Shown here in pieces: positions 33,848 to 47,541 of a DNA stretch of 64,000 bases. Source of the stretch: Hyaloraphidium curvatum SAG 235-1 (lineage: Eukaryota > Fungi > Monoblepharomycota). A program made the position numbers and the translations under genes. Location: positions 248,001 through 312,000 of the forward strand of contig JAIVFI010000011.1 of assembly GCA_025558095.1 (NCBI GenBank), given 5' to 3'. The stretch's first letter is position 1. Each line of letters starts with the position of its first letter. The notes under the pieces were generated by a model, which was not told where the DNA came from, ran no database searches, and saw only the letters and a list, made by a program, of their open reading frames with translations.

Positions 33848-36787
33848 TCAAAGTTCCGCGCCCTCTTCCAGGGACTTGAGCTCCTCCTCCAGCACACTCA
33901 TCCTCTGCTCAAAGATTTCAACGTCCCAGTCCGCCTGCGACAGCTCGAAGCGCGACTGCCGTAGCCTCTCTTCCGCCTGCAGAACCTGGTTCAGCAGGCG
34001 GTGGTATTGGGTATTCAATTGCACCAGCTGCAGCGGGGCAGTCAGCACGGGCGATCGATCGCCACGAGTAGCAGGTCCCACCTCGGCCTCCTCTTTGTGC
34101 GCCCACGACGGGAAGTACACGTCCCGCACGAGCCTCTCCAGATCCTTGATGTTGGACGGCGGGGGAGGCAGGGGGAACGGGGGCAGGATGCCGCGCGGCG
34201 GGCCCTGGGGCGGGGGCCGCACGGGGGGCCCCGACGGCGTGCCGGGCCTGGCGCCGGCAAACTGCTGCGCTCCGGGGAACGCGGTGCCGGCGCTGCGCGG
34301 GGTCGGCGACGGCCTCGCTTCCTCCTCCGCGGGGGTATTGTTCTGCGGCGTCGGGATCCGGAGGGGGGCGGGGTTCGTGGGGTTCGGAGGGGGCGGTTGC
34401 TGGGGCGGCGGAGGGAGGGATTGCGACTGCGGGGCCGGGGGCACGGCCTGCGGCGGCGGCCGTTCCGGTAGCGGCGCCGACACCGTCTGCGCCGGTGCGG
34501 GCTTGCCGGCCATACGAAACACGCTGTTGTACGGCTGGTCCTTTGCCGCGCCGGAAAGCTCGATGGGCACGAAACCCCCTGACGATCCGCGTCCGGAATC
34601 GGCGACGGGCGCGGGAAGCGCCCCCGATCGGCGGCCGTAGTAGTCCGGGGCCGTCGTGGGCCTCCATCCCTCCTTGGGCCTCTCGGGCGCCTCGGCATCC
34701 TGCATCACAACGTCCTCGTGCGGCCTCGGCGGCGGCGGCGGCTCGCGCGGGAGCGGGGCCGGGGCGTCGAAAGGTCGTGCGGGGGGAGAGGTCAGCGGAC
34801 CGTCGCGGGGCGGGCCGTCGCGCGGCGGCGCGTCGCGGTGGTGCCGATCGTAGCCCGGTCCCGGGAAGAACGGCGGGCCGCGACCGGGTCCGTTGGGACC
34901 GTAGCCGAAATCGCCCCTGGGAGGGAACTCCCGCTCGCCGCCCGGTGGCGGGCCGCGGAAGGGATACTCCCGGTCGGGAGGCGGGTAGAATCCTTCTCGC
35001 GGGGGATAGCCGCCCATCCGGCCGCGGTCGCCCGGGAAACCGGGGCGATCGGGGTAGAAGGGCCGCGGGGGAAACTCCCGGTCGCGCTCGTCCCTGAACT
35101 CGCGGCTTTCCGGGGCCCGTTCGCGCGGATCCCGCTCGCGCTCCCACTCGCCGCGCCCGGGAGGGCGTTGCGGATACCCTCCCGGATACGGTTCTCGCGG
35201 GCGATCGCGCTCGCCCGGGGGCCTCTCGCGGTCCGGCCTGGCTTCCCACTCGCGGCCCCGCTCCCCGTCTCTGCTCGAACCTGCGCCTTTGTAGTAGTAG
35301 TCGAAGTAGTACTCGTACCGCCTGCGGTACTCGGGGTCTTCGCGGCTGCTGCAACTCTCGAGGGCGTACACGTCGGCCCAGTGCGCAGCGTAGCGCTCGC
35401 GCTCCGGGTCGCGCCGTTCCCTTTCGCGCGACGACGGAACATCGCGTTCCCGGGAAGGCAGCGTGTCCGGCCTCGGCGGCCCGGCCCAGTCCCTCTCCCG
35501 GGGTCGCTCCTTGTCCCACGCACCGGGCTCGTCGCGATCCCGCGCGCGCTCGCCGTCGAACCTGCCTTCCTCCCTCGACGACGATCCCGGAGCACGGTAG
35601 TCCCTCGCGTCGTCCTTGTGCGGCGGGGTGCGGCGGACGTCGGGAGGCGTGCGGCGGGCGTCGGGCTGCGGTTCGTCCCTGGGCGGTTCGCGCGGCCTGT
35701 CCCTCTCCCTGTCGCGATCTCGGACGGCACTCCAGTCCTTTGGCCTCTCTGGCGGCACCTCGTCTCGCAGAGGCGGCGCGAGCCGCGGTTCGCGGCTCGG
35801 CGGTTCCGCGGGAAGTTCGGTGCTCGCGCTCTTTGCCGGCGTCGCCTCGGGGCGGCGCTGCTGGAAGGGCAGCGGCCTCCGCGGGCGACCTTCGTCGTCG
35901 TCGTTGCCGAGAGGAATCATGTTTGCACCCGTGACCTTGCGCGCCTGGTTGCCGCCGCCGCGCTTGCCGCCTCGGGCTTGCCCGCCGGGGGACCTGCCAA
36001 AGTCGGGCTGCGCAGCGTTCTGCTTCTTCTGGCCCCCATCGGACACCTTGGGCCGCGGAGGAAGCTGGTTGTTGGCGTCGCCCTGGGATCCCTGCTGGTT
36101 CTGCGACCCGCCCTGCTGCTGGCGCCTGTTCTCGCCCTTGCGGCCGCCTCCCCTGCCCGGCGTCCCCGCGTTTTCGGATCCCGGCGGACGGTACGAGTCG
36201 CTGTCGAAGGGTCTGCGTCCGCGTTCGCCCTTGCCCTCTGGCGAGGGGCGGTGGCGGCCCCGCGGCGATGCGCTACGTCCTGAGCGGGGTTGGCGGCCCC
36301 CGCGGTCGCTTGCGCGGCCGCCGCGCGCTGCTTTCTCGCCCGACGGCGGCGACGGGTCAGACTCGTCGCCGATCTCGCCCTCCTCCGGCTCGGTCTCGTC
36401 GTTTGCGGCCGGGGCGTCGGCCTCGGCGGCCGGCAGCCCGTTCGGCGCATCGGGGCCGCCCGCGCCGCCCGCGCCTTCTTCAGCCGGCCCGGGGCCCGCG
36501 ACGTCCGCGGCATTCAGCTCCGCGTCCGCGCCGCCCGCGCCCGCCGTGCCCGCGTCGCCCGCAGCGCGCGGCGATCCGAGCGACGCGTCGGCCGGCCTCC
36601 CGCCCGGCTCCCCCGCCGCGCCCGCGTCCCCTCCCGGCGCCCCCGCGGGCGCCGCCGCGTCGATCATCTGCGCGTCGCCATCGGCCGGCCGGTGCGGCTG
36701 CGCGGCGTCGGCGCCGTCCGCCGGCTCCTCCTGCGAAAGGTCAGGACTCCTCCGTGGGGCGCGCCCCGGCCCGCCGCCCACCTCCAT
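33848..36787 (-). CDS. Low-complexity (R/D/E/P/G-rich) protein with C-terminal coiled coil
   Basis: 979-aa ORF with RD/RE dipeptide tracts and terminal QYHRLLNQVLQAEERLRQSRFELSQADWDV. Confidence 0.7.
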   Translation of the reverse strand: MEVGGGPGRAPRRSPDLSQEEPADGADAAQPHRPADGDAQMIDAAAPAGAPGGDAGAAGEPGGRPADASLGSPRAAGDAGTAGAGGADAELNAADVAGPGPAEEGAGGAGGPDAPNGLPAAEADAPAANDETEPEEGEIGDESDPSPPSGEKAARGGRASDRGGRQPRSGRSASPRGRHRPSPEGKGERGRRPFDSDSYRPPGSENAGTPGRGGGRKGENRRQQQGGSQNQQGSQGDANNQLPPRPKVSDGGQKKQNAAQPDFGRSPGGQARGGKRGGGNQARKVTGANMIPLGNDDDEGRPRRPLPFQQRRPEATPAKSASTELPAEPPSREPRLAPPLRDEVPPERPKDWSAVRDRDRERDRPREPPRDEPQPDARRTPPDVRRTPPHKDDARDYRAPGSSSREEGRFDGERARDRDEPGAWDKERPRERDWAGPPRPDTLPSRERDVPSSRERERRDPERERYAAHWADVYALESCSSREDPEYRRRYEYYFDYYYKGAGSSRDGERGREWEARPDRERPPGERDRPREPYPGGYPQRPPGRGEWERERDPRERAPESREFRDERDREFPPRPFYPDRPGFPGDRGRMGGYPPREGFYPPPDREYPFRGPPPGGEREFPPRGDFGYGPNGPGRGPPFFPGPGYDRHHRDAPPRDGPPRDGPLTSPPARPFDAPAPLPREPPPPPRPHEDVVMQDAEAPERPKEGWRPTTAPDYYGRRSGALPAPVADSGRGSSGGFVPIELSGAAKDQPYNSVFRMAGKPAPAQTVSAPLPERPPPQAVPPAPQSQSLPPPPQQPPPPNPTNPAPLRIPTPQNNTPAEEEARPSPTPRSAGTAFPGAQQFAGARPGTPSGPPVRPPPQGPPRGILPPFPLPPPPSNIKDLERLVRDVYFPSWAHKEEAEVGPATRGDRSPVLTAPLQLVQLNTQYHRLLNQVLQAEERLRQSRFELSQADWDVEIFEQRMSVLEEELKSLEEGAEL

Positions 36788-36936
36788 TGCCTCCGCGCGA
36801 CGCCGCGGTCCTTACGCTCTATTCCCCGATCCTGAACGGCCCGCGAATCGGGTCGCCATCGGGCCCTCGCCGTTTTCTGTCGGCCTGTCAAAGCCGTTGG
36901 TGCGCGGATTTCCTGCACAATAAACGTCAAACCGTA

Positions 36937-39900
36937 GTTTCACACACAGGAGTCGCCGCGTGCGAATTTGCAACCGCTAGAGCACAGTCTCCATCGCAAA
37001 AGGCGCGTGGTGCCTCCTGCGTCGCATCGGGGAACGGCACGGCCAAAACATGCTTCTGAGCGGGCCAGAAACCGCGGTTCGGCTCAAGCAGACCGGCAAG
37101 CTTGGCCCGGACGAGATTGCTGCTGTACTCGCAATTCACCGAACGACGTATTTCCGTTGGATCCGCCGATGTGGGGCTCAGACCGTTCCGGACCATCCCC
37201 GCAAGGCCTTCCGCAAGGTGTCCGAGGAAATGGTCCGGCACGTAGTTGACGAGGCCAAAGCTCGCGTCCGCGTGACGCAAAGGGAGCTCGCTGCTGACCT
37301 GGCGGAAAAGTTTGGCGTTTTGGTGTCGCAGCAGCATATCTCGCGGCTGCTGAAGGCCAACAGGGTCACGAGGAAGAAGCTCACCATTAAGAGCGCCGAA
37401 GCCCTGAAACAACCCGAGCGGCACCGCATGTTCCACGAGAGGGTCACTTCCTTTGATTTGGGGCGCCTAGGTGCCTTGGACGAGTCCTCATTCCAACTCA
37501 ACGATCCGGGGCGCTTCGGCTACTCGGAGAAGGGGACTCCCGCCGTCGTATACCTGCCAGGGAACCGGGGCCCCAAGGTGACCCTTTGCCTCGCCATCTC
37601 ACCCACTTCGCGACCCGGTAATCACACTGGAAACGTGATCTCGTACCAGATCTACAGCGGCAACATGAACACCGAGAGGTTCTGTGCTTTTCTCAAGACT
37701 ATTCGCGCCGGGGCTTGTGGGTCCGAGTCCCTGGGCGTTATCCTGGACAATGCGGGTTTCCACGGCTCTCCTCTGCGGGCAAGGAAGACCACGGACGGCA
37801 CGGCAATAATAAAGAACCTCTCGGGCAAGTCGTTCCTTGCGGTCCAGGCCGTAGCAAAGGCCAACAATCTGAGCCTCATCTACCTGCGACCGAGATCGCC
37901 GGAATTTAACCCGACCGAGTACGTGTTTGCCACGATCAAGAACCTCGTGAGGCGGGACTGCCCCAGGACGGTGCCGGATCTCGTCCGGTCCATCGAGAGG
38001 GCCATTCAAATCGTCGGCCACGGCGATCTGATGGCGACGTTCCGGCACTGCTTGAAGCTAAGCGAGGCTGAGTTTGTGCGCATCGCGGAATCCGCGTCCG
38101 CCGGCAAATGTGTGGCGCGGAAGGTCACACTACAAGGTCAGATCTCTGCCTTTGCTTCTCCGGCTCCTCAGACGTGCCCTTCCGCGATGGAGGGCGCAGC
38201 AGCGACCCAGACCGAAGCAAACGCGGCCGAGCGGCTCGCTGAAGAGGTGGACTGCCATGACGGTTGCGCATCGGGCATGCAGACCGCGCTGACTCACGAC
38301 AACGCCCACTCCGAGCAGGCTCGCAACCTCGGCGTCGCCCACATCAACCCGCACCAAAAGCACACTTTGCTGACCCTGAGGGAAGTTCTCCACGTCGATG
38401 GTTCGGCGAGGGAATTCTTTGGGCCGTGGAACGACTTCACGGACTCCGCTCAAAGGACCGCGGGCTTCGACGCTGCGGACGTCCTCGGGGGCCTCTCCAA
38501 CCTCGGTGAAGCTCCTTTTGAGTTCATCTGTCAGCGGGTGGCATCGGGTCGGGGGTACAAGCTGGAGCGCGAGCTTTTCGTCGCGCGCCTCCGGAACATC
38601 GTCGCCCGGCGGCGCCGGGTCGCCCCCAGTCTGATCGGACCAGACGCACCGGCACCTCCCTTTTTCCGCCCCGCGGACGATGGCGCGGATCTGGGACCGC
38701 CGTCAGCCCCCGACGTCTCCATCTCCCAGCTGGATAACCTCGCCCGCTATGCCGACGTCCCACCGGAACTTAACGTCTCGTTCAAGAAAGCCAGCCGCGC
38801 CGCGTTGAAACAGCTGTTTCCGCTCTCAGCCCTTGCAAACGACACCGTGCTGGACGAGAGGTTCGCCATCCTCCTATCGGGCCTTGTACGAAACGGTCGT
38901 GGACCAGAATGGCTACGTGCGCTCGCTGTTTCTCTCTGGGGACAGCTCGGCCCGGCCGGGAGGGCACGCATGGACAGCTTCGAAACATCCGAGACAGCAC
39001 GTCGTGCTCTGCATTATGTTCACCAGCCCATTTCGAAGGTCTGTCGGTTGGAGTACCTCGAACGCGCGGCTTCGACCGAGTCTTTGCCAAGGAACCTTAG
39101 GCAGATACTGGAGGAAGCGTGCCGCACGCTGAAGGACCAGCAGGGCCGCTCGCTTTTTGATGCGTCGCCCGGCCTGGAGTACTTCCTTGCTTCGCTCTCC
39201 CTCCCGCAGCGATGCAAGATAGTCATGGCGGCGCGTTTGCCGGATAGTGTGGCGAGTCGCAATGCGGAAGGGCGCAAGAGATTCTTCGATTGGGCGGTGT
39301 GGAACCCGATGGCGGCCAACGAGGAGGCCCTCGCCATCGAGAATCCGGGTTCCGTTCCCGTGCTGGTGTGCAATCTCCTGTCGAGCAGCCCCGCAATCCC
39401 AAACTGATTTTTGCCCCGGCAGCTGCTTTCGTTCCCGGGCCTTTTCCAGATGAGCCCGGGCGTACCTGGACTGGATGCAGAGGGCGATAAGCTGCTGGCA
39501 ACCCTGTTCCTGAAGGCGGAGCAGCTCGGGTGGGAACACTCTTCCATGGTGACGCTGCGGCTGATGGAGTCGGGGCCCAAGATGCGCGATTTTACCCTGG
39601 ACTTGTGCGGTATGCCCGCGCTGGTGCGCGGTAGCAACCCCGAAGCACGGCAGGAGGCCGCGCGCACCGCGCTCGACGCCAAGCTCCACTTCCTCGCGGA
39701 ATCCGTTGGACTGCTGGACTTCGGCCGTATCCAGAAGCGGGATTGTCCGCTCTGTTCCTTCAGTGTGCAGGTGGAAGGCGAAGTCCCGGCGAAGGCTGGG
39801 CGGCGGCGCAAGGTCGCGGCGTCGGGGATGGTGGCTGACGGAGCTGCGCGGGAGCGTGTCTATGACGCCGAGCTTCGGCTCCTCCACCACGTCAAGGGTG

Positions 39901-42900
39901 CGCACCTCACCTGCAGAGCGTGCCCGGGGAAGGGACATCAGTTCGACCTCGAGAGTGAGTTCCGGCAGCATGTCGAGGAGAACCACCGTGGGGCGTGAGT
40001 TGCACCGCGCTTTCCATGCATGCCTGGGACCGATGCGAAGCTGACCGCCGCCGCGGACAGTTTGGTCGCCCCAAGGAATCTCACCACGTCGTTCGGCCAG
40101 TTCATTGCCAACGCACACTACATTGTCCCGTTCGCGTCGACAAACCTCAAAGCCAACATTCCTACGGGCCTCGGCGGCTCGTCCTGCCCTTTCTGTTTCG
40201 CCGGTGGCGGGAGGCACCGGCAGGAGTGCTCTCCGAAGCGGCGGTGGGTCGCGCTCAACGGCTTCCTCGCACTTGGCGACCCCCAGCACGAGCGATACAA
40301 GACGATGACGGAGCTGGCCGTCGAGTGGTTCCCGGCGGCCGAGGTGTGCCACCCATGGGCGCGGGGCCCGTACGAGCAAGTCGGGCCCCTCATCACCAAG
40401 GCCTGCACCCTCGCCGCCATCTTGTTCAAGATCATCTGGACCAAGATCTTGTTGCAGATCCACAACAAAGAGCTCCCGGACCAAGACGGATCCGTCACGC
40501 AGGACATGCTCGCCAGCTTTCCCCCGTCTTACGTCGCAAAGATTGCCATCCACGCCGTGCTTGGTGCCGGCCAGATGTCCGCCGCTGTTGGAACCCGCCG
40601 CGCGGGAAAGCAGAAGTCGGCCGGGCTCGGTGCTGGGGCGAGATACTCGGGCCATTCGGGTGCGCCAGGAGTGGAGCAGCTTGTGGACGGCGGTCCGGAC
40701 CTCGGAGCCAACGACGACGATCGAGACGAGGTGCTCGAGGACGTTGACTTCGAGGACGATGACGACGCGATGGCCGAGGACCAGGCCGGCGCCAAGATCT
40801 TGGCCGACTTCTTGCACGGCGAGCTGGATCAGATTGAGGACGAGGACTTGGTTACGGCTGAGGACACCCCCGATCTCTCGCAGGTTGCTGATCAGGGCGC
40901 ACCGTCCGTTCTCACCGTCGCGGAGCACAACGCAGCGGCAAAGCTTGTCCGCAAGGCGGCCGTTGCTGCGTTTGCAGAGGCGCGGGAACTTGTGGGCGAG
41001 ACGTACGAAAAGCTCAGGCCGCTTTTCGTGCAGGGACCTTTGCTCCGCTATGCCGAGCAGGTCGCTTTCAACCGAGCTCGAAGCGTGCCGCAGCGGCTGC
41101 TGACTGCGCTCAAGGTTCTCATCCGTCGCTTCCTACGCGGGGAGGTGAACGCGGGCGTCGGCCGGAGGCGGATTGGCCCAATCCTCAGCTACGCTCTGGC
41201 AAAGCTCGGATATGGGGACGACGACTTCTCCAATTTCCCGTTCGAAAGCGCATTTGGCTGTGGTCTTGCCGAGGCCACGGAGCTCAGGGTCGGGCTGGGG
41301 AGGCTTTTCCGGCCGTTCAGAGGCTTGCAGCTGAACCGGATCGTTGACCTCCGGGATTCAAAACAGAAGCCGCCGGTGCCGGCAACCGTTTCGCAGCGGA
41401 GGGTTATCGCTCGGGTCCTGCAGGACAAGCAGGCGGGCAACCCCGTGGCGGCCGCGGTGCGAACCGTGAACCTGCCGAAGGGCAAGCCGCGCGGAAAGGT
41501 CGACGCGGAAACGGAGGCGGTGCGCAGCTACCTCCAGAACATTTGGGAGACGCTGCCGCGGGCCTCACCTGCGGAGAAGGCTGACTTGCGAAAGGTGGAG
41601 CTGCAGGAGCTGAGGGACTGGGTGGTTGCAAACCGTCTACAGCTTCGGAGCATCCCCTTCCGCTACCCGGCCGTGACCACGGCAACGATTCGGTCGACAG
41701 AGCAGAAACCCAAGTTCTGGGTCCCCGAGCACGCCGAGGACATGAACGAGGCGGCGGCGGCGGCATTGGTGGGGCAGAACCGGCCCCACTGGGAAAGCGA
41801 GAAGCTTCTGGTGGCGCGGATGAGCGAGTATGACCTCGACAAGTGTCGTTCATCCACGAACCCCGCGGACGAAGCCTTCGGCTTCCAGATGTGCTTCATC
41901 GCCCTGCACGAGCTCGAAAAGCAGGACGAGGCGCTGAAGAAGAGGGCCGCGTCCGCGGCTGCTGCACTGCCGGAACCTGGAACGGCGCGGAGGACGAGCA
42001 CCGCCAGGGACCCCGATTCAACCCCAACTTTCCCAACCATTTCAACTGCTCCGGTCAAGGACAGGGAGGCTTCGAACAAGACCAGGAGGGCCCGCAACAC
42101 GTGGCGGCCGCACCGCGTCGAGAAGCGGCATTACAGCAAGAATGGCTCCCCGAAGCGATGGCACGGGTTCGTCGTGAGCTTCCGTAAGCGCCGACCGCAG
42201 CCGGGGCCCGAGGGACTCGCCAAGAAGGAGACCATGGAGACGAAGCGGCGGGAGCGCAAGGCGGCCGCCGCCGCCGCGATGGCGGGGCTTGGCGCCGCCC
42301 AGACCGGCAAGGAAAAGGCAGCCTCGTGGGCGCGGCGGAAGCTTCGGGCTGCGGTCGCCGAAATCAGCTTGTCCCCCGTGACCGTCTACATCTCGGCCTC
42401 GGATCTGCCCGAGTTTTTGTCCAAGCTGGGCGTGGAGGTCGCGCCTGGCATCGACACCTCGCGCGTTGACTCGGACTACCTATTGGGCCACCTGCTCAAC
42501 GGCGGCAACCAACTCGTCAACGAGGACCGGCTCTTCCGCCTCCGTCAGCAGGGCAAAGTCTCGGCAAGGGGCCATGCCGCCGCCACGCAGCCCATCTATC
42601 GTCGCACCGCGGACGTTCTGAGGTACTCCGGCGTCCGGGGCATCTATCATTGCGGCAGCACCCTGGGCATTCTTAACGAAGAAGTCTCCTTCGTGGAAAA
42701 GGTCTCGTTCCAGCAGTCGCAGCAGCAGGAGCGGCAAAACACGACACAGGACGTCGAGCCGCCAAAGCGCGCAGCGCATTCGCCAGCAGCCGCGCCGGCT
42801 CCTCCTGTTCAAACTCGGCCCACCGTCTCCGTTCCCGCCGCAGCTCATGTGCCCGCCGGTCTTGCTGCTTTCGAAGTGGATGTTTCGTTCCCTCGCGATG

Positions 42901-45539
42901 TTCCGATGGATCCCTACCCGCCGCTCTACACCGGTCCATGGCTGCCAAACGGCGATCCGGACCCGCCGTGCGACATGGCTGTCTTCGATGGTGGGCATTT
43001 TGCTCAGTGACGCACGGGTTCGGAGGCTGATCGGATCCTCACTTTTCCAGGCCAGAATCGGATTTGGCATGGGGGCATGGTCTACTACCTGCAGGCGACG
43101 GCCCAAGGGGACGAATCGGTCCCGATGGATTGGGAGCCCTCTTATTGTGCCAGCAGCAACCTTAACTTCACCACCATGCCTTCCGAGCCTCCGGCGGACT
43201 GCGGCATCCCCGCCGCGGTCCCGCCGGAACCCCCGCCCTTTTTCTCCTTCGTCGAACCACCAGCCTCGACTTCTCTCCCTGCCTCCATTCCCCCGGAACC
43301 GCCCCCGCATTGGGTGCACGACCCGTGCTCGTGCTGTCAAGATGCCGCCTGCAAGGCCGTGGACTGTGCGCCCAACGTGTTCGCGCCCCTGAGCTCGGGG
43401 CACAACGACCCTCCCTGCGCGACTGTCTCGCCCGGTGACTCGGTGCCCGAGACTTCTGTGCATCCATGCGCGGCCCTTCCTTTCCCCGACTTCTCGCCGC
43501 CACTTCCTTCCCCCTTCCTTTCTTGCTTCCCTCCCGAAGTCGTCGTTTGCGCGGTCGAACCGTCGCCGCCGACGGTAACGGTCGAGGGCAAGTTCGCTGC
43601 CCCCGTACCTCCTCAGCTGGCCCCGACCCCGGTTCCGCTCCCGCCGCGTTCTGCCGAGCCGTTGCCGCGGCCCCCGGTCGACTTCAAGACTGGCATTCCC
43701 GTCTACTACCTCAGCCGCCCTGACCATGTGTCCGTGCTGGCACCCAATCTCCTGCACATGCCGACGCAGGCGGAAATGTTCGAGCGGGCCGAGCGCGGCG
43801 AGCCAGTGGAGGGCGGGGTCGTCGACGTGGATCCGAATCGCTGGTTTCTGGCTGTTGCCAACCGCCGCGTCGACGTGCGGCTCGTTGCCAAGAGCCTGAA
43901 CCCCGGGCCGAACGGACGCTACGACTTCGCCAACAGTCATCTGCCGGGGACAACGGAGCGCATCACCGTGACCAATGCCGACGGCACCAAGTCGCACTAC
44001 GTGCCGAAGCGGGCGAACCCGTCCAAGGCCGACGGTTCCGTCAGCTTCGGGAGGATCGTCGGCTTCCACCTAGAGCACTCCTGCTCCGATACTAAGCGGA
44101 TCGCAAGGTCTTTCGGTCCGTCGCCGCCTGCCGCTGGAGCCTGCAGACACCACCCGCTCTGGGAGCCCAAGATCTCGGAGTTCAAGCCGCCGGCGCCCGA
44201 TTCGCGCCCCAACGACGCTGCAAAGGCGGAGAAGCACGCTCGGCGCAACGTCGAACTGTTCCCGACCCCTGGCGGCTGCACGGACGAGTTTGGTGCCAAG
44301 CTGTGGGGCGAGGTCGCTGGTGCCGGCCGTGCGGGGACCCCGGCGCTGCCGGAGCTCATCCTCGGTGTTCCGGCCAAGCTCGACCGCCGCCTGTGCGGCT
44401 ACGACAAGGCGGCCGCGCGTCTGAATGCCACCAAGCGGACCACCATGCTGGACGTCAACGATTGCGAGGGCAACCCTGTGCAGAAGTCTCTCCACGATTT
44501 CGAGCGCGACCTGCCCTCTCAACGCACGACAAACAGTGCAGCCTTCTCGGACTACACGAGGGCGCTGCTGCCACAACTCGACCGCATCCTGGACGTCTAC
44601 TGTTCCGGAGAACGGAGGTGGGCAAGCCAATCCCTGTGGCAACGACTTCGCTCACGCATCCTGCAGCCTGGATCGTGTGCGCACGATTCGCCGGCGCCGC
44701 GAGGTCCTCAGCTGGATCTGTCGCGACATGTGTCGCAACCCGTATTCGGGCAAGTACGATCCACAGACGACCATCGCATACGGCGCCGCGCGATTCGGCC
44801 ATGCGAGCAAGGGCGGCCCGGCCTCCCGGATCGTTCGCTTCAGGGCGGAGCTGGCCAAGGCCGGGATCATGGTCTTGGTCAACGAGTACCTCACGTCCCA
44901 GATGTGCAGCTGGTGCGGCAGCCGCCGTGATCATCCGACTCGCCTGACGTCCTTTCCAGCTGCAAGACCACCTATGTCGTCGGAATCCGGAACCCCGGCT
45001 CCAAGGGCGAGGTGCGCGGGGTGAAATACTGTCTCCTCTGCCGCCGCTTCTGGATGCGCGACGTGAACAGTGTGCACTCCATGGAGCACCTCTTCTGGTT
45101 CGGCCTCATCACCGGAGGGGAGCGCCCCTGGCCGTTCAGGCCGGACACCAGGAAGCCGAAGCCGCAGCCCAAGCTCCGAGCTGGGACTGGTGCAGCGCCG
45201 CGCAAGTCCGCGGGTGAGCGCGCTCGCATTCGCGACGGTCATCCCGAGCGTCATCCCGAGCTGATCCGGGAGCTCCAGGTGCCGCCACAGGCCGCAAGCG
45301 TACGGCCGCAAGCGCCGCGAATGGGTCGGTCAAGAAGCTCAAGCCGGCAAGCTGACCTGGCCGCGGAAACAGTTACAAGTTGGCGTGCCATGCACCGCGT
45401 GGGCGCCATTGCATTTGCTTGATCGAGGTGGAGTCCGTCAGGGACCGCCTTTTATTCGCAGGCTCGATGATGAACATTGCTGCTAGGCCGCAAAGGATTG
45501 CGGCACAGGGGGAACAGTAGCAGTTTCTGAGAGTGTAGC
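36937..45539 (+). mobile_element. IS630/Tc1-mariner-type DNA transposon carrying a Fanzor (about 8.6 kb)
   Basis: TA at 36935-36936 and 45540-45541. Imperfect terminal inverted repeats: GTTTCACACACAGGAG versus GCTACACTCTCAGAAA (reverse complement of 45524-45539), 10/16 identical. It encodes a DDE transposase and a Fanzor and sits between two divergent host genes. Exact ends are inferred. Confidence 0.75.
37050..45422 (+). CDS. Transposase-Fanzor fusion protein, predicted 2,697 aa (exons 37050-39365, 39423-39994, 40061-42990, 43051-44617, 44667-44912, 44960-45422)
   Basis: Five GT-AG introns of 57, 66, 60, 49 and 47 nt each have a branch motif and preserve phase; exons total 8,094 nt. N-terminus: HTH plus ALDESSF / ILDNAGFH / SPEFNPTE. 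C-terminus: VDVDPN, IAYGAARF...LVNEYLTSQMCSCC, CLLC..FWMRDVN, RPWPFRP. Confidence 0.8.
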
Positions 45540-45560
45540 TACGTACGTACGCGTTCGCGC
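45421..45560 (+). ncRNA. Candidate Fanzor omega-RNA (scaffold at element right end plus flanking guide)
   Basis: Hairpin GCCGCAA-AGGA-TTGCGGC (45487-45504) is enclosed by ATTGCTGCT/AGTAGCAGT (45476-84/45516-24). Further stems are ATCGAG/CTCGAT (45422-27/45463-68) and GTCC/GGAC. The position matches TnpB/Fanzor guide RNAs. Confidence 0.55.
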
Positions 45561-46203: not shown

Positions 46204-47541
46204 CTAAAGCTTGCCCAACTTCGCACTTCCGCCCTGCGGCACGATCTTGACGTTGGGCACCAGGCCCATCGACCGCATCTCGGCGATCTGGTCCGAGAGC
46301 ATCCGCTCGGTGTCCCGCCAGCCGGTCCAGCCGAACGACTTGGCCTTGTTCATGCCTGCGGCGCGGTCAGCGTCGCAACGTTTCCCGAGGCAAACGAAAA
46401 CCCACTGGCGAGGCTGCCAAAGAGGATGGTCTGGTCGACAAAGTCCAGCGGCGCGTAGGTCCACCCCTTGGGGTCCAGCTTGGGGTCCTGCTCGCAGAGC
46501 AGCTTCCACGCGTACTCGGCCTTGCTGGTCTTGGAGTCCGCGGCCGGGTAGGGCGCGGCCATCTCCTTCTCGATCGAGAAGCGCCGCCACGACACGGCCT
46601 TGACGTCCTTGGGCACGTCGCGGACTTGGAGCCCGGGAAATCAGCCCATGCAATCGCAACGCAGCACCGCAAAGGCACCCACACTGGTCCTCGGGCACGA
46701 CCGCCCCAAACTCCTCGGCCACGACCGGCCAGATCAGCGCCCAGTTGAACAGGTCGCCGTTGGTCATGTTGAGCATCTCCCCCCTGCACTTCGGCTCGCG
46801 CATCGCCCACAGGTTGAACTCGGCCAGGAGCTTCACGTCCGTGGCGTCCTGCCAGGCCTCGTACGCGACGGCGGATCCGGGGAACACCATGGGCTCGCCG
46901 AGCACGGCTTTGCAAGAGGCGTAGACCGCGAGAGCGACGCCAAAGTTCATGGCGGCCTGCGAGGCGGCGCCGAAGATGATCGAGGGCGCGGTGACGGTCC
47001 ACTTGCCCTCCCACCGCTTGCCACGGGAGAAGGATTTCAGGAACTCCATTTGGGGCGTGTAAAAGTACTTATTCCATCTGGCGTTCGGTCCAGCGCAGCG
47101 ATCTTCCCTCCACGGTCTTTTGCTCGCGGTGCCACCGTAGACGCCCAATCCGATCTGCAGGAGGACGAATTCGAGGCTGCAGACGGCGTCCGCGGCACGG
47201 AGCGAGCGCCGGAACATGTCCGCGTTCTTGCCGTTCATCGCCGGCGTCCCGTCGTCCATGTACGCCATGTAAAGCACGTGCGTGGCGTCCTTCCCCCTGG
47301 GATCCTTGCGCAGCTCTTCGATCGCCCGGTTCTCCCCGTCCTCGAGCAGGAGGTCGACCGAGACCCAAGACAGCCTCGCCCTCTTGTCGCCCAGAGACGC
47401 AAAGAACTTTTCGTTCGGCGGCCGCCTCGACAGGCCGATCACGTGCGGGACCTCGCTCTCGGGCAGGGAGAGCAGGAGGCTGATCTGGGCCGTGCCCGAG
47501 ATACCGTTGGCCCCGACCACGATGGGAATCATCGGCGGCAT
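46204..47541 (-). CDS. NAD(P)-binding SDR of the PRISE/progesterone 5-beta-reductase-like family, spliced
   Basis: IVVGANGISG, GLSRRPP, THVLYMAY, FYTPQ, LAVYA...PMVFPGS, NMTNGDLFNW..IWP. Confidence 0.82.
   Translation of the reverse strand: MPPMIPIVVGANGISGTAQISLLLSLPESEVPHVIGLSRRPPNEKFFASLGDKRARLSWVSVDLLLEDGENRAIEELRKDPRGKDATHVLYMAYMDDGTPAMNGKNADMFRRSLRAADAVCSLEFVLLQIGLGVYGGTASKRPWREDRCAGPNARWNKYFYTPQMEFLKSFSRGKRWEGKWTVTAPSIIFGAASQAAMNFGVALAVYASCKAVLGEPMVFPGSAVAYEAWQDATDVKLLAEFNLWAMREPKCRGEMLNMTNGDLFNWALIWPVVAEEFGAVVPEDQCGCLCGAALRLHGLISRAPSPRRAQGRQGRVVAALLDREGDGRALPGRGLQDQQGRVRVEAALRAGPQAGPQGVDLRAAGLCRPDHPLWQPRQWVFVCLGKRCDADRAAGMNKAKSFGWTGWRDTERMLSDQIAEMRSMGLVPNVKIVPQGGSAKLGKL

Follow-up and report, generated by a model that had tools for sequence, protein, structure and literature searches.

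Can a eukaryotic DNA transposon carry its transposase and an RNA-guided nuclease in one and the same polypeptide? The question is raised by a locus of the fungus Hyaloraphidium curvatum SAG 235-1, found in a stretch of 64,000 nt of contig JAIVFI010000011.1 (65% GC), here called the window and used for all positions given below unless another sequence is named. Between positions 37050 and 45422 of its + strand, a transposase of the IS630/Tc1 type, with a helix-turn-helix (HTH) region and a DDE catalytic core, appears to be joined in a single spliced open reading frame (ORF) to a nuclease of the Fanzor1 type. Tc1/mariner and other transposons are known to carry Fanzors, whose role there is unproven. 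An earlier note on this DNA had stated that the Fanzor is typically encoded by a separate ORF beside the transposase, and the published Mariner elements indeed carry two separate proteins (Bao and Jurka, 2013; PMC3627910). A natural transposase-Fanzor fusion is not mentioned in Saito 2023 (PMC10432273), Jiang 2023, or Yoon 2023 (PMC10711439), and none was found in full-text literature searches. What is new at this locus is the fused architecture; what was already known is the association of Fanzors with Tc1/mariner elements.

The answer that we consider probable is that the window contains one copy of an IS630/Tc1-like transposon whose sole gene fuses an HTH-DDE transposase, a linker of about 1,800 aa and a Fanzor1-like nuclease, presumably made as a single polypeptide and serving in homing.

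A Spliced Frame of Six Exons

Once five introns are removed, the interval 37050-45422 amounts to 8,094 nt, that is, 2,697 codons and one terminal stop. The earlier note had proposed that six ORFs are joined here through five canonical introns with branch sites, and that no stop separates the transposase from the nuclease. The coordinates, the GT..AG borders of all five introns and the branch-like motifs were confirmed, and the frame is open up to its single terminal stop. The introns measure 57, 66, 60, 49, and 47 nt, with a CTNA[CT] branch-like motif 15-30 nt ahead of the acceptor. The exons form a chain of long same-strand ORFs, open over 772, 190, 976, 521, 81, and 153 codons and separated by gaps of 3-66 nt, none of them of promoter size. 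With a stop expected about once in 40 codons of a random frame at 65% GC, chance does not account for exons that stay open over 772 and 976 codons. Database searches were run exon by exon, and the exons were joined only for the frame check, for the alignment of the two families described below and for the selection analysis. Antisense ORFs also lie over the element (38913-40928, - strand, 671 aa; 42480-44069, - strand, 529 aa); they are without homology support and are a usual by-product of a GC-rich coding strand.

Exon 1 (37050-39365, 772 codons) encodes HTH regions (aa 9-120) and an IS630/DDE_3 core (aa 143-302), followed by 430 aa of no assigned function. It ends at intron 1 (39366-39422, 57 nt, phase 0), for which an intron of the same position and phase is present in a second family of elements of the same genome, called family 2, the copies of the window element being family 1. 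Exon 2 (39423-39994, about 190 codons) contains Cys/His zinc-finger-like motifs and precedes intron 2 (39995-40060, 66 nt), whose phase 2 is kept in family 2. Exon 3 (40061-42990, about 976 codons) corresponds to conserved linker and is bounded by intron 3 (42991-43050, 60 nt, phase 1), matched in family 2 both in position (after ..AV[FV]DG) and in phase. Exon 4 (43051-44617) begins with about 200 proline-rich residues and continues with the RuvC-I strand (DPN, Asp codon at 43830-43832) and a helical region. Intron 4 (44618-44666, 49 nt, phase 2) recurs at the same position and phase in family 2 and in L073, a metagenomic relative, and the ORF of L035, a stand-alone Fanzor paralogue, is uninterrupted at this place. 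Exon 5 (44667-44912) carries the alternative RuvC-II Glu (44884-44886, within NEYLTSQMC) and the start of the first CxxC. Intron 5 (44913-44959, 47 nt, phase 2) splits a zinc-ribbon Cys codon: the third Cys codon of C-S-C-C reads TG|C across the junction. Finally, exon 6 (44960-45422) provides the second CxxC (45030-45041), the RuvC-III RD (Asp codon at 45060-45062), a non-conserved basic tail and the stop. At the point of intron 5, the relatives L042, L040, L039, L073, and L035 read without interruption as ..SQxC-x-x-C... Introns 4 and 5 are validated because uninterrupted homologues align colinearly across them.

The Transposase Module

A DDE_3 profile match at the N-terminus, which had been suggested as a check, is obtained with exon 1 well above the Pfam cut-off (56 bits, E 5.3e-15; cut-off 28.6), and the NCBIfam IS630 model NF033545 gives 126.8 bits (cut-off 100). 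The catalytic triad previously read at D37479, D37746, and E37917 corresponds to D144, D233, and E290 and is invariant in three lineages, namely family 1, family 2, and L073. The distance of 56 residues between the second Asp and the Glu is unusual for IS630/Tc1-mariner. By its sequence, the N-terminal part is a transposase of the IS630/Tc1 HTH-DDE type, with an intact triad.

The Fanzor-Type Module

The Fanzor signature comprises a RuvC-I DPG, an alternative Glu six residues before a CxxC, a CxxC..CxxC pair with a spacing of 12-18 and an RD motif (Yoon et al., 2023; PMC10711439). At the C-terminus of the fusion, the corresponding elements are DP-x, E-x6-CxxC (N-E-YLTSQM-C-S-C-C), and CSCC-x22-CLLC-x6-D (RDVN). 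The three residues put forward earlier as the Fanzor triad, D43830 (VDPN), E44884 (VNEYLTS), and D45060 (WMRDVN), are all in place, the RuvC Asp and Glu being about 335 aa apart. The alternative Glu stands six residues ahead of the first CxxC with the same spacing in L042, L040, L039, L041, and L035. A CSCC/CLLC zinc finger assembled only by splicing had also been described. Its first half stands, as CSCC is split by intron 5; CLLC in the second pair is found in the window copy only, where aa2569 (position 45034) is a private Leu in place of the Pro of the nine other copies, and family 2 has C-P-T-C.

Several uninterrupted relatives exceed the 26.3-bit Pfam cut-off for the TNB domain: L042 (36.5 bits, 52% identical), L040 (34.5), L039 (42.9), L073 (38), and L035 (32.4). 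L035, an intron-free Fanzor paralogue of 599 aa from the same genome (G000:C2:397554), has no DDE part, and exons 4, 5, and 6 are colinear with it (BLASTP E 4e-13, 5e-10, and 6e-11). TNB matches in this genome also include L036 (C5:336026), L037 (C2:426655), and L038 (C14:724943); with L035 counted, three of them are above the Pfam cut-off and one lies in an open frame of 972 aa. The best PDB sequence matches of L035, all weak, are TnpB/Cas12f/Fanzor2-type chains, and the profiles of exons 5 and 6 had no relevant match among PDB sequences. With the AlphaFold2 (AF2) model of L035, the top two Foldseek matches are the Spizellomyces punctatus Fanzor structures 9cey and 9cez (E 0.018), and the top VIA match is the same Fanzor (Z 5.2 over 71 residues). 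A HMMER search of 1.84 billion representative proteins with the exon-4 profile retrieved five relatives; a word-based homologue search with L035 had no match. The relatives have a TDG-like strand region upstream of RuvC-I. Altogether, the C-terminal part is, as predicted from these motifs and alignments, a Fanzor1-like RuvC/zinc-ribbon nuclease, and its catalytic residues are intact.

The Linker Between the Modules

Between the transposase and Fanzor parts, a linker of about 1,800 aa is encoded. Within exon 3, a C-x2-C..H..C motif and two helical bundles held apart by an acidic disordered stretch are followed by a conserved C-terminal part. The AF2 model of the linker is helical; Pfam gave no match for exons 2 and 3, and Foldseek gave no PDB match for the linker model. 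With single exons 2-6, Pfam detected nothing beyond a sub-threshold TNB fragment. Searches of the ESM Atlas with exon 3 gave scores of at most 0.85, to be taken as leads only. Homology was found with ORFs located upstream of the Fanzor part in other loci. hhalign matches exon 3 to such ORFs in L040 and L041 (probability 95%, E 1.6e-8), and the middle ORF of L073 (1,075 aa) matches the ORFs preceding the Fanzor part in L040 and L041 with E 1e-92. The match of exon 2 to L040 is weak (E 0.002).

Conservation of the Fused Layout

Family 2 consists of five copies of 8,654 bp in the same genome, with one frame of 2,623 codons and canonical introns; its sequence, as used here, is a composite of L030 (5844-10000) and L031 (- strand). 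It is homologous to family 1 over the full length at the protein level only, with about 40% identity overall (range 28-74%), and the homology is found only in the proposed frames. By region, exon 1 is 44% identical, exon 2 36%, exon 3 33-41%, the C-terminal half of exon 4 44%, exon 5 81-83%, and exon 6 67%. All five family-1 introns have a counterpart of the same position and phase among the seven of family 2, and the intron sequences are unrelated. The two extra family-2 introns apparently lie inside the region corresponding to family-1 exon 3. The outermost element base varies among family-2 copies (a/g/t at the left end, g/g/c at the right end).

A third lineage is represented by L073, a 10.8-kb metagenome scaffold of ENA, and by L079, 99% identical and from another sample. 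On one strand, L073 shows in order a DDE_3 domain (52 bits, 42% identical), three long ORFs, a RuvC-I exon, and a TNB exon (38 bits). In both scaffolds DDE_3 and TNB are about 9 kb apart, and strong GTGAG..polypyrimidine..CAG introns occur at every ORF junction. Intron 4 is the only one whose position is matched between L073 and family 1. The element of this lineage is about 10.4 kb long (L073 86-10504, L079 46-10471). Its right end, GTGTATAGCCA, is similar to those of families 1 and 2, and its left end, CTTACTGTAGC, looks like a direct, not an inverted, copy of this motif. In L073/L079, the duplication at the flanks is ambiguous (1/2). In the GROS21-1 series of ENA metagenomes, the protein clusters of L073 and L079 comprise 53-68 members. 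Word-based homologue searches gave one match for exon 1 and one for the L073 linker. A metagenome scan returned 30 loci, all of them distant C-terminal Fanzor matches in which no DDE or linker homology was found. As judged from these alignments, the fused layout is kept in three diverged lineages.

Selection was estimated from the ratio of nonsynonymous to synonymous substitution rates (dN/dS) between families 1 and 2. The values are lowest in the two catalytic modules, with 0.16 for the DDE part and 0.16 for RuvC-II/TNB, against 0.36-0.55 for most of the linker and 0.22 for the proline-rich stretch; they are rough because dS is saturated. In every region, the proportion of nonsynonymous differences (pN) is lower than that of synonymous ones (pS). 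Among family-1 variants, those confined to a single copy number 26 nonsynonymous and 10 synonymous, those shared between copies 8 and 10; the shared synonymous variants are distributed along the whole frame.

The Element and Its Copies

In the 31.9-Mb genome (55 contigs), family 1 has ten copies including that of the window, with 99.6-99.95% identity. The window copy extends from 36935 to 45541 on the + strand (8,607 bp, full copies having about 8,629 bp), and homology with the nine other copies stops at both points. It is flanked by a 2-bp target-site duplication, CG (36933-36934 and 45542-45543). A 2-bp flanking repeat is present around 8 of 9 family-1 copies and all three testable family-2 copies, that is, 11 of 12. 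The duplicated sequence is variable (CG, GC, TG, CC, AC, AT, GT) and in no case TA, so the TA duplication of IS630/Tc1-mariner is not observed.

The element is bounded by an imperfect terminal inverted repeat of about 26-28 bp, in which 17 of 28 positions agree when the full-length left end is aligned with the reverse-complemented right end. The right repeat (45514-45541, + strand) reads ..CAGTAGCAG...GAGTGTAGCTA. From a comparison of the left ends of all copies, the left repeat of the window copy (36935-36948, + strand) is truncated: the 22 bp that follow 36948 elsewhere, and that include a GCTACT box, are deleted. CACAC and GCTACT boxes occur within the terminal inverted repeats of both families, which also share the right-end terminal sequence GTGTAGC(C/T)A, near-identical to the right end of L073/L079.

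The earlier note had called for a search for other copies with the same continuous frame. Seven of the ten family-1 copies are without disabling lesion and keep the 2,697-codon frame open wherever they were read (in five + copies, the reading omits about 500 bp, window 41050-41550, and lesion counts cover the remainder), and family 2, as said, is also one frame. The damaged copies are C35 (K2265* and a 5' deletion), C15 (a 1-bp deletion), and one C7 copy (an in-frame 171-bp deletion). In the window copy, the frame is open, with three private amino-acid changes, one of which is the Leu within the zinc finger. Short of the left-repeat box and with this Leu, the window copy may no longer be mobile.

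Outside the giant frame, the element has just 115 nt ahead of the ATG and 119 nt after the stop, so that it contains no other gene. By all appearances, it is a recently active, autonomous IS630/Tc1-like DNA transposon, belonging to a young family that has multiplied. Near-identical copies without disabling lesion suggest that it is still active, and it could therefore be studied in its own host. On its left, a 979-aa ORF (33848-36787, - strand) without Pfam match starts about 150 bp from the element, so that the insertion lies upstream of this ORF. On the right of the element, about 660 bp separate its end from a PRISE-like Rossmann gene (46204-47541, - strand).

A Conserved Block at the Right End

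Does the element carry the source of a guide RNA? At 45417-45455 (+ strand), a 21-nt block, GCTTGATCGAGGTGGAGTCCG, leads into a short hairpin and a T-run. The block is identical in both families and overlaps the stop codon in family 1, the 3' untranslated region in family 2. The genome contains exactly 15 occurrences of its 17-nt core, GATCGAGGTGGAGTCCG, all of them in the 10 + 5 element copies. In family 2, the core lies at 4731-4747 of L031 (- strand), and the two families are otherwise about 65-70% identical in DNA. The 21-nt block is a candidate piece of a guide-RNA scaffold, or alternatively a candidate transposase site. A two-sequence consensus fold of the conserved block showed no covariation, and an Rfam search gave no match.

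Mechanism and Alternative Readings

In the reading that we favor, the main product would be a single polypeptide. Its DDE part would excise and insert the element, with a 2-bp stagger and duplication. Its Fanzor part, loaded with RNA from the right end of the element plus flank, would cut empty or excised sites, and repair would then copy the element back. The model is borrowed: homing by cutting of empty sites is the role proposed for TnpB (PMC10432273). Fusion would guarantee that both activities are delivered 1:1 to the element's own ends. More speculatively, the full-length fusion could be a working enzyme, a natural single-chain transposase and RNA-guided nuclease whose covalent linkage would tie excision and insertion by the DDE part to the guide-directed cleavage of empty sites, resulting in a self-contained drive that cuts, pastes and copies back; in its boldest form, this would mean RNA-steered insertion, a eukaryotic counterpart of the CRISPR-associated transposons (CASTs). 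We give this stronger proposal somewhat less than an even chance. A conserved translational fusion argues that transposase and nuclease act on the same DNA at the same time. The homing hypothesis becomes directly testable with one protein, and such an enzyme would offer a natural starting point for RNA-programmable tools that insert DNA in eukaryotes by means of a single chain.

A number of observations speak against this picture. For the nuclease, the third RuvC-I residue is Asn in family 1, family 2, L035, and P0002-P0005 (DPN, not DPG, the Asp-Pro being kept), and the CxxC-CxxC spacing is 22 vs. 12-18 in the published pattern. Exon 5 reaches only 22.6 bits against Pfam TNB (model positions 13-38), below the 26.3-bit cut-off, a low score because intron 5 splits the domain. 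Support for the RuvC fold from the L035 model, whose mean predicted local distance difference test (pLDDT) value is 56.6, is weak, suggestive and not decisive. Homology to the WED/REC region was not detected when the C-terminal part of exon 3 was compared with the TDG-like region of the relatives (hhalign probability 4%). Concerning the guide, shuffled sequence folds as well as the right-end region (z = 0.13), and no conserved flanking motif that could be a target-adjacent motif is visible by eye at the insertion sites. The contrast between private and shared variants fits purifying selection on the active lineage and is not significant (Fisher p = 0.07). As for the single product, retention of any one intron gives a truncated protein.

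The main rival, which we judge unlikely, is one gene with several products, where intron retention, alternative splicing, an internal start or proteolysis would yield a separate transposase and a separate (giant) Fanzor, the fusion being at most a precursor. Retention of intron 1 leads to a stop at 39405-39407 and a transposase-only product of 785 aa. In L073, the first intron comes directly after the DDE domain, and its retention gives a transposase of 457-472 aa, an ordinary size. Stand-alone Fanzor paralogues without DDE, such as L035, exist in the same genome, and long disordered acidic and proline-rich stretches separate the modules. However, separate products alone would not need a frame that stays open across every junction in three lineages, most of the linker is under constraint of its own, synonymous shared variants run along the whole frame, and the ORFs leave no promoter-size gap.

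A second rival retains the single polypeptide and changes its function. Instead of a homing nuclease, the Fanzor part would be a module for targeting or RNA binding, which would hold the transposase to its own RNA (cis-preference) or steer insertion as Cas12k does in CASTs. Fusing a DNA-inserting enzyme with an RNA-guided module would follow the logic of CASTs, and the right-end block is perfectly conserved between the two families. Against this, the RuvC D, E, and D are all conserved, and their region has the lowest dN/dS. Moreover, the sites of the 15 insertions (10 of family 1 and 5 of family 2) are unrelated, their 2-bp duplications vary and no common flanking motif is seen by eye, whereas a fixed guide would reuse one target. 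We regard this reading as very improbable.

That the fusion is an artefact, with GC-rich DNA, few stops and freely chosen GT..AG pairs mimicking one frame over independent or decaying ORFs, is scarcely credible: long spurious ORFs such as that of 671 aa do exist on the opposite strand and at some junctions the frame would also be kept by many other GT..AG pairs, but homology is confined to the proposed frames with pN < pS in every region, the five introns recur in position and phase in family 2, whose protein is about 40% identical, introns 4 and 5 are crossed by uninterrupted homologues, and seven of ten copies are open over 2,697 codons.

Relationships With Known Systems

The closest published elements are PGv-1 and PUl-1, Mariner elements that encode transposase and Fanzor1 as separate ORFs and show TA duplications (Bao and Jurka, 2013; PMC3627910). 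Like them, the element described here combines a DDE transposase of the Tc1/mariner superfamily with a Fanzor1-type TnpB homologue between inverted repeats. What sets it apart is that both modules share a spliced frame of 2,697 codons, with some 1,800 aa of additional conserved linker, and that its 2-bp duplication in no case reads TA.

Among the characterized Fanzors, SpuFz, the Fanzor1 of S. punctatus (PDB 9cey/9cez; Saito et al., 2023; PMC10432273), is likewise of the fungal type and is the top match of the L035 model. SpuFz has about 600 residues, and its inverted repeats enclose no transposase. In contrast, the present module has DPN at RuvC-I, a D-to-E distance of about 335 aa, and no WED/REC homology detectable by hhalign.

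Membership of the IS630/Tc1-mariner group is indicated by profile scores above the cut-offs, an N-terminal HTH, the DDE triad, and short inverted repeats. The element departs from this group by the 56 residues between the second Asp and the Glu, by the absence of a TA duplication and by a protein that runs 2,350 residues further.

As in the IS200/IS605 and IS607 elements, a transposase is paired with a nuclease of the TnpB family in one element. There, TnpA and TnpB are encoded by separate genes, the transposase chemistry is unrelated (HUH or serine), and an omega RNA is made from the right end; in the fungal element, a guide from the right end is putative. Finally, CASTs, in which Cas12k operates with Tn7-like machinery, illustrate how a TnpB-derived RNA-guided module can work with a DDE transposase. 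CASTs are prokaryotic, multi-protein, and nuclease-dead systems that insert at guide-specified sites. In contrast, the nuclease residues of the H. curvatum element are intact and its insertion sites are diverse.

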